NCBI GenBank assembly: GCA_002269645.1
Contig: NIVC01002139.1
Location: 1-40,583 of the forward strand
Reading direction: 5' to 3'
From: Macrostomum lignano
Lineage: Eukaryota
Length of the DNA: 40,583 bases
How positions within the stretch are numbered: the first letter of the stretch is position 1; every line of letters starts with the position of its first letter. This document shows, piece by piece, positions 344 through 17,257 of the stretch. A program made the translations under genes and the position numbers. The notes below the pieces were generated by a model that saw only the letters and a list, made by a program, of their open reading frames with translations, was not told where the DNA came from and did no database searches.

Positions 344-443
344 CTGGACAGGTACCAGGAGATGAGCAGTATGAGCATGAGCATGGTGAGCACCAGGCCG
401 ATCCCGGTAACAGTCAGGATCCGGTCGGTTCGATGGAAGCAAT
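344..443 (-). CDS. Neuregulin-like exon: transmembrane helix
   Basis: Acceptor ctgcttttccag, donor AG|gtttgt, 100 nt, phase 1 to 2. Encodes (D)[32 protein letters not shown]. This frame is absent from the ORF track. Confidence 0.9.
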
Positions 444-3400
444 CTGGAAAAGCAGTTCAAAAATGACTGTCTGGGCAACGCGAGATCAGCTGATTTATCA
501 GCTGACGTTGTGAGGCGGCCTTTCTTACCCAAGACTTTGCCTTTGCAGGTCTCGGTGAAGTTCTTGTAGGGCATCATGTTCCTCTCACAGCGGTCTCCAT
601 GGTAGGGGTAGGTGCAGCTGGGGATGGCGGAGCGGGGCGGGTTGAGATCTGAGATTTGACAACGCATAACTCCGCAAGAATCCCTCGCGTCACTCCTGAA
701 CTCCTCTGAGAATTTCTCTTGAACTATTTTGAGAATCGCCTCTAAACTCATCTAGAAATCGTCCCTAAACGTCTCCAAGAATCGGCCCTAAACCCCTTCC
801 AAGAATCGCCCCTAAACCCCTTCCAAGAATCGGCCCTAAACCCCTTCCAAGAATCGCCCCTAAAACCCTTCTAAGAATCGCCCCTAAACTCTTCCAAAAA
901 TCGCCCCTAAACTCCTCCAAGAATCGCCCCTAAACCCCTTCCAAGAATCACCTCTAAACCCCTTTTAAGAATCGGCTCTAAACCCTTCAGAAGAATCGCC
1001 AGCTTCATCACAGGATTAAGTGTGTGACACAAGTCAGCTGAATCAGAACTTGGCCCAGGCCAACTGCATCATTGACCTTCGGAATCGATGTCGGAGTGCG
1101 GAGGCTTCGATCAGGGCCTGGAGGCCAAATACTTGCACCATAAGCCGCTGACTCGTTGCAATTATTTCTGTCACCTGGGCTAAAAAAAGTGTCAATTTCA
1201 ACGCCCATCAATAAATGACCAATGGGAATTGGGAAGATTTCCCCGGCGCAGGAATGATACGACTCAGATAGGGAAGGGCAGCCAGAGAGCCAGCACGGAT
1301 CAACACCCACCATAGCAACTCACTCCGACACCCCAAATCCCAATCGCGAGTCAGTAATTCCCACCAAATCCCCGATCCCCCATCGCGAACACGCCGGGGC
1401 CAAAATGAGAGATTTCCGCTGCGTCGAACACCCACTGGCTCGTATTGGCACACTTTCTTTATAATGCTAAACTATTTTCCTTTTCTGAGTATTTTTATCC
1501 CAGATACGAATAGTAAAAATTAAATGGTTTTTTAAAGGGCTCGAACCTGAGACCTCTAGCTGTGACCTAAGGGAAAATTCAGGCTCAACTCAGAAATAAA
1601 CTCAAGTTACACTAGGGCTCGAACTCGGGACCTCTAGTCGCGACCTGAGGGAAAATTCGGGCTCAACTCGGAAACGAACTCAAGTTACACTAGGGCTCGA
1701 ACCCGGGACCTCTAGTCGCGACCTGAGGGAAAATTCGGGCTCAACTCGGAAACGAACTCAAGTTACACTAGGGCTCGAACCCGGGACCTCTAGTCGCGAC
1801 CTGAGGGAAAATTCGGGCTCAACTCGGAAACGAACTCAAGTTACACTAGGGCTCGATCGAACCCGGGACCTCTAGTCGCGACCTGAGGGAAAATTCGGGT
1901 TTATAATTGAACTCGAGGTTACACTAGGATTCGAACTCGCAGCCTCAAGCCGGACCTCAGAAAAAGTTTTGATCAAAATCAAACTCAGGATCACGCTATA
2001 GGGCTCGAACCGGGGACCTCACGAATGCAAGCAATGCTGGTGCAGACGTTGAGGTCATAAAAATGGAAAGAGCCGCTCCAACGCCCTCTTAATAACCCTG
2101 TCCCCTTTTCTCTCGCCATCAAGCTCTGATGGGGAACCTTTATCCGATCCCAGCCAAGCGTGAAAACTGAGCCCCGAGCTTCTCCATGTTGTGGGAAATT
2201 ATTTTTCCGCGAAATGATCTATTAAAATAGTTCTCCTTGGCTGAGTAGAGATTGCCGCCCCGTGTTGATTCGGGAGATGCCCGCCCAGGTGTGGATGACA
2301 AACGACTGAGCCCCGCTCCCCAGTTTTTATGGGAAATCGTCAGTTCCTCTCTGCATCTCTCAAGCTGCGGCAGCGATGAAAATTCTTCCATAGCTCGGAA
2401 TTGGGCGTCCCGGATCTCGCGTGGGCCCTCCTCTCTTCTTCATCTTCATGCCCCCTGCTTTCTCTCTTTGCCAACCCCCTTAGGCGACAAGCACTGGATA
2501 AAATAATGGGAGAGACTTGGAAGCGAGTCTAGCATAGCAACCAAACAACTTAGCACTTCTTTCTCAAGTAAATATAATTTCATAGATGTAAGATGACTGC
2601 ATTGGGCAAGATACACAGTTATTACTCATAATTTGGTTAATGATGTGTAGGCTACGAGCTCAGCTTCTTCGAATGCGGCATAACGCAGATTTGAAGGGTG
2701 GTGGCTGTCGCTCACACAGGGTCCACAGCGCTGACTTTCTTAACGTAAGGCATTTACACTCCGCCTTGGGGTTGGCCCTCACGGTCGAGAACTGAATAGA
2801 TATTGCATAGTGCCTTTCCGCGAGAGCTAACCGCGGTCAGCTCTGCTTAACTCAACTCTACTTAGCTCAGGCAGGGCCACTCAAGCACAGAAATGAACTC
2901 ACACAAGTTCTGCAGTTAGCGAGACAATGAAAATGCAAAAAAACTGCATTGTCAAACTGAAGCCGTCCGATTCACAATTAACTGTGTTTTTGCAGCTCGC
3001 TGTTGGTAATATTCACTAATTATTAATTACCTTGTGACAAAAGGCTTTTGACAGTCAGACTGTTAAAAAAATTTCCTTTGGGAGAAATTTCAGTTGGCAG
3101 AATCCCGCCGCTTCTTTCAATTGTCTCCAGTTTTTGCATCCAGTCATAATTATTTTCCCATTGTTATACTTGGGCTTCAATACTAAATACTTCAGACTCC
3201 GCCCCTTCTTCAGTGTTTTGTGGGAACAGAATTTCACCAGCTGTCCGGGAGATGGCCTGTGCGTCTGATGTGGATTTTGCTGCGAGATCGGCGGACTAGT
3301 CTGGAGATTCTGCCTCTAATAGCTGCAGAATCCCAATGAGATCTAGAGATTCACAATGAAATCTAGAGATTCACAATGAGATCTAGAGATTCAAAATGAG

Positions 3401-16554: not shown

Positions 16555-17073
16555 TCCGATCTAGTCTCACTGACTCGGATCTAGTCTCACTGATCTCTGA
16601 TCTATTATCGCTAATCTCTGATCTAGTATCGCTAATCTCTGATCTAGTATCGCTAAACTCTGATCTAGTCTCACTGATCTCTGATCTAGTGTCACTAGTC
16701 TCTGATCTAATCTCACTGATCTCTGATCTAGTATCGCTAATCTCTGATCTAGTATCGCTAATCTCTGATCTAGTATCGCTAATCTTTGATTTAGTATCGC
16801 TAATCTCTGATCTAGTATTGCTAATCTCTGATCTAGTATCGCTAATCTCTGATTTAGTATTGCTAATCTCTGATCTAGTATCGCTAATCTCTGATTTAGT
16901 ATTGCTAATCTCTGATCTAGTATCGCTAATCTCTGATTTAGTATCGCTAATCTCTGATCTAGTATCGCTAATCTCTGATCTAGTCTCACTGATCTCTGAT
17001 CTAGTCGCACTAATATTTGATATACGAGCTAGTCCCACTAGTCTAGTCTCACTACCAATAGATTTAGTCTCAC
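16555..17073. repeat. 21-bp minisatellite (TCTGATCTAGTATCGCTAATC)
   Basis: About 22 copies, degenerate toward 17073. Confidence 0.93.
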
Positions 17074-17257
17074 CAGTAATATAATCCACCTCAACCGCAA
17101 TGAGGTACCGAGCTCGAACCCCGGGACTGGCGGTCGTAGCCAAAGCAGATCTCGAAGTTTCACCCTGCGACTCTTGAGCCGCGACGCTGAAGCCGGCAAG
17201 TAATAGTGTTACCATGGCAACGAGCGCCGACAGGCGGTGTTTGGTAATTCGCCGCAT
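17074..17257 (-). CDS. Probable first coding exon (signal peptide) of the neuregulin-like gene
   Basis: MRRITKHRLSALVAMVTLLLAGFSVAA|QES has basic n-, hydrophobic h- and small-residue c-regions. It ends at a phase-1 donor G|gtgaga. Other donors at about 17089 (phase 0) and 17109 (phase 2) are possible. Confidence 0.6.

Follow-up and report, generated by a model that had tools for sequence, protein, structure and literature searches.

Does a series of very small exons, scattered over repeat-rich DNA of the flatworm Macrostomum lignano, encode a membrane-anchored ligand of the EGF receptor (EGFR), and is this ligand of vertebrate character? The question arises from an initial annotation of contig NIVC01002139.1 (assembly GCA_002269645.1; 40,583 nucleotides, here called the window), which had proposed that positions 344 to 17257 hold a cryptic neuregulin (NRG) with vertebrate-like domain layout and exon phases. 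Judged from the sequence, the locus probably holds the 5' part, roughly four-fifths, of an M. lignano gene whose product is an NRG-type pro-ligand and a type-I membrane protein, and the vertebrate-like framing is overstated: on this reading the gene is one further NRG-type EGFR ligand, of a kind already described across bilaterians.

Seven small exons splice into an Ig-EGF-transmembrane protein

On the minus strand, seven small exons with a total length of 710 nucleotides (nt) can be joined into a stop-free coding sequence of 236 residues; from the N- to the C-terminus, it encodes a signal peptide, an Ig domain of the I-set, a Thr/Pro linker, an EGF domain with six cysteines, a stalk of 26 residues and a transmembrane (TM) helix. 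The exons are listed below together with one candidate alternative exon; identities refer to the M. lignano protein A0A1I8GW14 (P0001), and E values are from tblastn searches with this protein against the window.

17257-17164, minus strand, 94 nt: exon 1, with ATG and putative signal peptide MRRITKHRLSALVAMVTLLLAGFSVAAQESQ; phase 0 to 1, donor CAGG/gtgaaa, in a phase that fits the acceptor of Ig exon a
11464-11275, minus strand, 190 nt: Ig exon a, N-terminal half of the I-set domain, with Cys57; phase 1 to 2; E 6e-22
6135-6023, minus strand, 113 nt: Ig exon b, strands E to G with DSGNYTC (Cys116), ending in SIQKWVYV; phase 2 to 1; 79% identity, E 1.4e-14
5289-5242, minus strand, 48 nt: linker exon, Thr/Pro-rich; symmetric phase 1-1; good splice sites and open frame
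4933-4858, minus strand, 76 nt: EGF exon a, Cys1 to Cys4; phase 1 to 2; aligns to human EGF, to A0A1I8GW14 (E 0.01) and to many NRG-type ligands
617-529, minus strand, 89 nt: EGF exon b, Cys5 and Cys6, and the stalk with extra Cys; phase 2 to 1; 58% identity
443-344, minus strand, 100 nt: juxtamembrane and TM exon; phase 1 to 2; 97% identity, E 1.6e-14
12169-12079, minus strand: candidate alternative 5' exon MQDQGQYHHTEPNGGSPDSQFVHIFWSLYR, with ATG and without signal peptide; phase-1 donor GGG/gtgaga, in phase with the Ig exon

All six acceptors are CAG preceded by a pyrimidine-rich tract and all seven donors start with GT (GTGAG in five cases, GTAAG and GTTTG in one case each); from Ig exon a to the TM exon, the chain of phases runs without a stop (1>2, 2>1, 1>1, 1>2, 2>1, 1>2). 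Six of the exons had been named by the initial annotation, and their splicing in frame into an Ig-linker-EGF-stalk-TM protein is supported by the GT/CAG splice sites, the unbroken phases and the tblastn matches. Three of them had been described as invisible in the list of open reading frames (ORFs), and indeed their in-frame ORFs have only 58, 0 and 47 amino acids (aa), below the cut-off of 60 aa. The seventh exon, with the signal peptide, starts at position 17257 and thus accounts for the upper coordinate of the locus. About 37% of the region between 344 and 17257 is tandem repeat. A 283-aa ORF at 17257-16406 was considered as a single exon and rejected: past residue 31 it enters a 21-bp tandem repeat.

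The predicted N-terminus consists of a charged stretch (MRRITKHR), a hydrophobic core at residues 9-27 (Kyte-Doolittle) and AAQ, and a second hydropathy peak at residues 211-235 corresponds to the TM helix. The stalk between EGF domain and membrane has an N-glycosylation sequon and two further cysteines, Cys198 and Cys205, in a Cys-x6-Cys arrangement; these two are probably joined by a disulfide into a small loop close to the membrane, which could influence cleavage of the stalk.

For exon 1 no homology support was found, and the choice between its two donors is putative: a second phase-1 donor at 17074 (ACTG/gtgaga) would add 30 residues and keep the frame. The linker exon, too, has no sequence homology in its support and, being symmetric, could be a cassette exon; with its 48 nt included, the linker has 24 aa, close to the 25 aa of A0A1I8GW14. 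A tandem acceptor at 5298, 9 nt upstream, would add VQS, again in frame. The candidate exon at 12169-12079 is identical in 9 of 15 positions to the residues that directly precede the Ig domain of A0A1I8GW14, and the junction has the same position in both (tblastn E 0.2); it is probably an alternative 5' exon that resembles the N-terminal part of A0A1I8GW14, and alternative first exons are thus possible. A trans-splice acceptor (ctgctag/AGAATG) might precede this exon instead.

At the other end, the TM exon closes with a donor (CAG/gtttgt) that points to further exons beyond the contig; the 343 nt left before the contig end are taken up by a tandem repeat with a unit of 36 bp. The window thus does not include the cytoplasmic tail, and the model is partial at its 3' end.

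The exons have one close relative and no database entry of their own

The spliced protein was searched against a protein database of 5.8 billion sequences that includes assemblies of public sequencing runs. The single significant match was A0A1I8GW14, with 62% identity over 80% of the query (E 4.6e-79). In the reverse direction, the matches of A0A1I8GW14 to the Ig, EGF and TM exons of the window are all collinear, and Pfam recognises an I-set domain across both Ig exons (E 5.7e-17); by these similarities, the exon set is far beyond chance.

Neither the single-sequence search nor a search with a four-sequence profile identified a protein from these exons in the database, although a tetratricopeptide repeat (TPR) gene of the same contig is present there; the gene is thus apparently unannotated. 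The expectation of the initial annotation that automated pipelines would have difficulties with this locus was therefore well founded: genes with exons of 48-190 nt among tandem repeats, cut by a contig end, are an example of what escapes annotation. The profile, built from the window protein, A0A1I8GW14 and the polyclad NRGs described below, matched only A0A1I8GW14 and one irrelevant multi-Ig protein. When a profile of 274 positions was run against a representative library, the best 150 matches were giant multi-Ig proteins, and the only full-length match was again A0A1I8GW14. The Ig domain alone returns generic I-set matches from the PDB (titin, contactin, Robo) and is not diagnostic.

With only 62% identity, A0A1I8GW14 is a paralog rather than an allele. 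It comes from the same species, has the same architecture and ends at the same residue (...SWYLS). The automated model of A0A1I8GW14 differs in three points: a signal peptide is missing, an exon corresponding to 12169-12079 is used, and Cys1 of the EGF domain is absent; the protein is named 'Ig-like domain-containing protein' and not a ligand. At about residues 180-190 of A0A1I8GW14, corresponding to 4925-4933 of the window, a Leu stands in the place of Cys1, so that the cysteines are odd in number; either the exon start was modelled wrongly in this entry or the Cys1-Cys3 disulfide has really been lost.

Similarity between the two paralogs is unevenly distributed. The juxtamembrane and TM exon is nearly identical (97%), compared to 42-79% for the Ig and EGF exons (about 60% for the ectodomain). 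This distribution suggests either strong constraint on the membrane segment or gene conversion.

The EGF module has the hallmarks of ErbB ligands

Stein and Staros described three features of ErbB ligands: an EGF domain whose coding sequence has a splice site between Cys4 and Cys5, a position of this domain near the TM segment and an Arg before Cys6 (PMC1618406). The window protein has all of them: the intron from 4857 to 618 splits an Asn codon (AA/C) between Cys173 and Cys175 in phase 2, 26 residues lie between Cys6 (Cys184) and Arg211 at the start of the TM segment, and residues 181-184 read GDRC. The phase of this intron, the GDRC ending and the TM start RILTVTGI are exactly as the initial annotation had read them, and with these published hallmarks the protein is, as had been proposed, a candidate EGFR ligand. 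GDRC is also the end of the EGF domain of NRG1-beta. An intron between Cys4 and Cys5 is near-universal among ligands of the EGF family, Vein included (PMC1618406), and has been called 'near-invariant' in work where the same features picked out IGEG-2 in Caenorhabditis elegans (PMC12485627); because of this wide distribution, it indicates a ligand, not a vertebrate neuregulin.

The six cysteines of the EGF domain (Cys152, 157, 163, 173, 175 and 184) all align with those of human EGF. When the segment from EGF to TM is compared with the PDB, the best match is human EGF (1ivo_C, E 5.4e-4), with identity in DS.CP, YCLH.G.C, CNC and Y.G.RC. The phmmer matches listed at E <= 10 are EGF modules of human and mouse EGF, Notch and uPA, and no NRG1 chain is among them even at this threshold; the EGF module is thus nearest to human EGF and not to the neuregulin EGF modules. 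In the EGF-EGFR complex, EGF makes contacts with Tyr13, Leu15, Arg41 and Leu47, and the counterparts of these residues in the window protein are Tyr, Leu, Arg and Met.

EGF exon a holds the only Cys1-Cys4 motif of the window that adjoins a Cys5-Cys6 half. A motif scan of all six frames of the window found a single Cys5-Cys6 half exon (587-616) and no second one that could serve as an alpha/beta alternative.

The protein groups with neuregulin-type ligands

Barberan et al. (2016) divide metazoan EGFR ligands into an EGF-type, with EGF only, and an NRG-type, with EGF, Ig I-set and TM; NRG-type ligands are present in most bilaterian groups including flatworms, are inferred to have arisen with the Bilateria and have lost the TM segment in several lineages, TM-less Vein among them (PMC4914847). 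With one I-set domain, one EGF domain and one TM helix, the window protein falls within the NRG-type as defined there.

In BLASTP comparisons, 18 of 19 NRG-type proteins matched the window protein, many of them with a single collinear alignment from Ig to TM. The best match, NRG-2 of the polyclad Prostheceraeus vittatus (94 bits, 36% identity over 224 residues), is also the reciprocal best, so that the comparison with ligand families agrees with the placement among neuregulins made by the initial annotation. It is followed at some distance by the NRG-types of Schistosoma (61 bits), Drosophila (Vein, 59 bits), Owenia (59 bits), Helobdella (57 bits) and Crassostrea (53 bits), and by human NRG2 (46 bits) and NRG1 (32 bits). 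NRG-1 of P. vittatus has as its best matches NRG-2, the window protein and A0A1I8GW14. The M. lignano NRG described by Barberan et al. is a different gene, with the canonical spiralian N-terminal domain, and only its Ig domain aligns; this N-terminal domain was looked for in the window and is absent.

The grouping does not depend on the Ig domain. A profile of the window protein and A0A1I8GW14 from EGF to TM, with the Ig domain excluded, was compared by hhalign with profiles of 13 NRG-types (the polyclad pair left out) and of 19 EGF-types. The NRG-type profile aligned over 80 columns and through the TM segment, with a local score of 82.3 and a probability of 98.6%; the EGF-type profile aligned over 41 columns, restricted to the EGF domain, with a local score of 58.0. 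Global scores were 75.8 for the NRG-type versus 50.9 for the EGF-type. In the NRG-type alignment, the TM start of the window protein is placed on the consensus rvlti.gI.

A juxtamembrane motif, [KD]R[VIL][LI]T..G[IL], is present at the start of the TM segment of the window protein. Elsewhere, this position reads KRVLTITGI in human NRG1/2, KRVLAITGI in amphioxus, KRVLTVVGI in Saccoglossus, DRVITIMGI in Lineus, DRVITISAI in Owenia and, more loosely, RDRLTIIGI in the oyster Crassostrea. Within the sequence file of Barberan et al., the searched 4-mers R[VI][LI]T at the TM start were found in NRG-type ligands only; spiralian EGF-types carry M[RT]TA[NS]IAAG there instead.

Relation to other Ig-EGF ligands

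The window protein, A0A1I8GW14 and P. vittatus NRG-2 have several details in common: an Ig domain ending in ...KKWVF/Y.AV, a loop of four residues between Cys1 and Cys2 of the EGF domain, a cysteine pair in front of the membrane and the signature RT.DR.LT..GIGL...LIL.ISW. Between the window protein and NRG-2, Ig exon b has 56% identity; NRG-2, too, has a single I-set domain (ending ...KKWVFLAV) followed by a linker, and its stalk reads DCIGSHDC where the window protein has TCKGKVLDC. P. vittatus NRG-1 resembles NRG-2 in its single I-set domain with the ending ...KKWVFLAV, the linker behind it and the short Cys1-Cys2 loop, but the stalk cysteine pair and the TM signature are not clear in it. 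Both P. vittatus proteins differ from the window protein in their much longer linker and stalk; they are from another flatworm order, were derived from a transcriptome and have a cytoplasmic tail. On these sequence features, the M. lignano gene, A0A1I8GW14, P. vittatus NRG-2 and probably NRG-1 form a flatworm NRG-type subgroup. Its marks are the short Cys1-Cys2 loop in all members and the membrane-proximal cysteine pair in all but P. vittatus NRG-1.

Vertebrate NRG1/2 have the Ig domain, the one EGF domain, the TM segment, the Cys4/Cys5 intron, the Arg before Cys6 and R[VI]LT[IV]TGI in common with the window protein. They are membrane-anchored precursors released by shedding, which for the window protein may be supposed by analogy. 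However, identity is only 20-23% (32-46 bits), the A and B loops of the window EGF domain are shorter, NRG1/2 have no stalk cysteine pair and the window gene has no alpha/beta alternative EGF exon. Drosophila Vein likewise combines Ig and a single EGF domain with the Cys4/Cys5 intron, and with 30% identity across Ig and EGF it scores above the human NRGs; it is secreted and has no TM segment, whereas the window gene retains both the TM segment and the NRG-type juxtamembrane motif. The small Ig-EGF-TM precursors SISS-1 (IGEG-1) and IGEG-2 of C. elegans act genetically through LET-23/EGFR (PMC12485627). By description these have the same Ig-EGF-TM layout and the Cys4/Cys5 intron, and at the level of function no better precedent was found for a compact Ig-EGF-TM ligand of invertebrates; the 2016 survey did not include them among the NRG-types. 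Human EGF differs by the absence of an Ig domain, its origin from a large precursor with many EGF domains and its longer A and B loops.

Alternative explanations

The initial annotation had seen in this gene a membrane neuregulin closer to vertebrate NRG1/2 than to Drosophila Vein. Of this, the assignment to the NRG-type and the retained TM segment stand; the vertebrate proximity does not, as Vein outscores both human NRGs. The Ig-EGF-TM layout, taken as specifically vertebrate-like, is the ordinary layout of bilaterian NRG-types (PMC4914847). A true orthologue of vertebrate NRG1 or NRG2, with phases and layout retained and closer to these than to invertebrate ligands, is accordingly very unlikely. 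In its favour are the similarity of RILTVTGI at the TM start to RVLTITGI of human NRG1/2, and the division of the Ig domain between two exons that are followed by a small symmetric spacer exon. In NRG1, the Ig domain is likewise divided between two exons, and a small spacer exon comes next (E178/E122/E51), a parallel that serves here as a lead. The juxtamembrane motif, however, although real, is not a vertebrate mark: it occurs also in amphioxus, a hemichordate, a nemertean, an annelid and the oyster. In addition to the BLASTP ranking, the PDB returns human EGF and not NRG1 for the EGF module, the alternative half exon that would distinguish alpha and beta forms is absent from the window, and the canonical spiralian NRG with N-terminal domain is encoded by another M. 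lignano gene.

Several observations weigh against an NRG-type ligand gene altogether. Ig and EGF are promiscuous modules, and the Ig-EGF-TM combination could, in principle, have arisen on several occasions. The EGF domain has the spacing CX4CX5CX9CXCX8C, with short loops A (Cys1-Cys2) and B (Cys3-Cys4), and deviates from the textbook ligand spacing CX7CX4-5CX10-13CXCX8C, although the short A loop is common to P. vittatus NRG-1 and NRG-2. The EGF model of Pfam gives no match to the window protein at E <= 1 and matches A0A1I8GW14 only below threshold. The database holds no protein from these exons. The cytoplasmic tail, the part that would carry any neuregulin intracellular domain (PF02158), is beyond the end of the contig; this domain has been reported only in deuterostomes and a priapulid (PMC4914847). 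Finally, the NRG- and EGF-type reference sequences were machine-read from the supplement PDF of Barberan et al. and contain character recognition errors.

Some of these points fit a surface protein of Ig-EGF-TM layout with a role other than that of an EGFR ligand, for example in adhesion or recognition, its modules having been combined independently of the neuregulins. Shuffling of Ig and EGF is common and is made easier by phase 1-1 exons; the short loops and the Pfam result fit this view, known ligands do not have the additional disulfide in the stalk, and mucins and meprins, unproven as ligands, also have the intron and TM features (Stein and Staros, PMC1618406). Yet the single EGF domain so close to the TM segment, with the Cys4/Cys5 intron and the Arg before Cys6, the conserved equivalents of Tyr13, Leu15 and Arg41 of human EGF and the profile match to NRG-types that extends through the TM segment all point to a ligand, and for two members of the subgroup, P. 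vittatus NRG-1 and NRG-2, both the classification and the clustering of Barberan et al. had given the NRG-type (PMC4914847); a protein outside EGFR signalling is thus unlikely. It is also unlikely that the locus is a paralog that has fallen silent or is decaying, or a fragment of the assembly, with A0A1I8GW14 or another locus as the functional copy. Neither an annotated product nor a transcript-derived protein was found in the database, the gene is cut by the contig end, about one-third of the locus is tandem repeat and the adjoining TPR gene has an apparent frameshift. In a decaying gene, however, one would not expect seven open exons out of seven with good splice sites, nor the retention of every structural cysteine, unlike in the model of A0A1I8GW14, from which Cys1 is absent; and a TM exon at 97% identity next to an ectodomain at about 60% is a pattern of constraint and not of decay.

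Possible mode of action and significance

If the gene encodes an NRG-type pro-ligand, then, as in other members of this family, the precursor would be displayed at the cell surface, and a sheddase of the ADAM or rhomboid class may cut the stalk and release the Ig-EGF part; alternatively, the uncut form may signal to the adjoining cell. The EGF domain would bind one of the eight M. lignano EGFRs via the Tyr and Leu of YCLH, the Arg of GDRC and hydrophobic positions behind Cys6. The Ig domain may tune range or potency, by analogy with what has been discussed for NRG1, Vein and SISS-1.

In the survey of Barberan et al. (2016), M. lignano has eight EGFRs and two ligands, one EGF-like and one NRG-like (Table 2 in PMC4914847). 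Together with A0A1I8GW14, the locus described here would lift the NRG-type count of this species from one to at least three. M. lignano is a model for regeneration and stem cells, and NRG/EGFR signalling governs both regeneration and the behaviour of neoblasts in planarians and acoels. Given this role, additional M. lignano ligands are concrete targets for RNA interference and in situ hybridisation. The picture of neuregulin evolution is unchanged, with Ig-EGF-TM ligands already placed at the base of the Bilateria.

A wider interpretation, which we regard as possible but doubtful, is that M. lignano and early-branching flatworms in general carry a distinct, compact NRG-type subfamily that was missed by surveys and is characterised by a disulfide-clamped stalk, a near-invariant TM segment and isoforms with signal peptide or leaderless. 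Were this the case, a part of the 'missing' ligands of the eight EGFRs would come from this subfamily, the invariance of the TM segment would suggest that a function within the membrane or in back-signalling has been conserved, and the alternative 5' exons would be reminiscent of the NRG1 isoform types.

Other features of the contig

A second gene lies at 34026-39331 on the minus strand. Its TPR exons encode a protein similar to the protein O-mannosyltransferase TMTC3 (about 40% identity over 99% of the joined query) with 98% identity to BOX15_Mlig011102g1 of Macrostomum lignano. The BOX15_Mlig011102g1 model covers only 34026-38829 and does not include a TPR exon at about 38990-39331; at the C-terminal end, the frame of the model stays open into a tandem repeat of 33 bp (34128-34306). 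At about 39020-39045 (minus strand), in the GC-rich run GGCCGGCGGGCGG, the reading frame switches: NAASVLQDS continues as RQTAKQMLEQLAELEPDNAG in another frame, caused either by an assembly indel of one nucleotide or by a real frameshift.

Stretches resembling tRNA, with the B-box GGTTCGATTC, are present at 11154-11235 (minus strand, in the intron just downstream of Ig exon a), 20055-20067 and 21528-21540. From their sequence they look like the heads of short interspersed nuclear elements; ARAGORN and Rfam called nothing in the window, including at the stretch next to the Ig exon.

The long ORFs of the locus other than those mentioned have no Pfam matches and are read-throughs of repeats. Tandem arrays were found at 35219-38689, 17788-19807, 7787-9654, 20489-21186, 25754-26249, 27669-28090 and 39562-40582; they comprise a 14-mer (254 copies), a 16-mer (128 copies), a CT-rich microsatellite of about 1.9 kb, (ATC)n with 233 copies, two (AGAC)n arrays and a 30-mer (34 copies) that runs to the end of the contig. 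These arrays create most of the long ORFs of the window and also a strong local GC skew.

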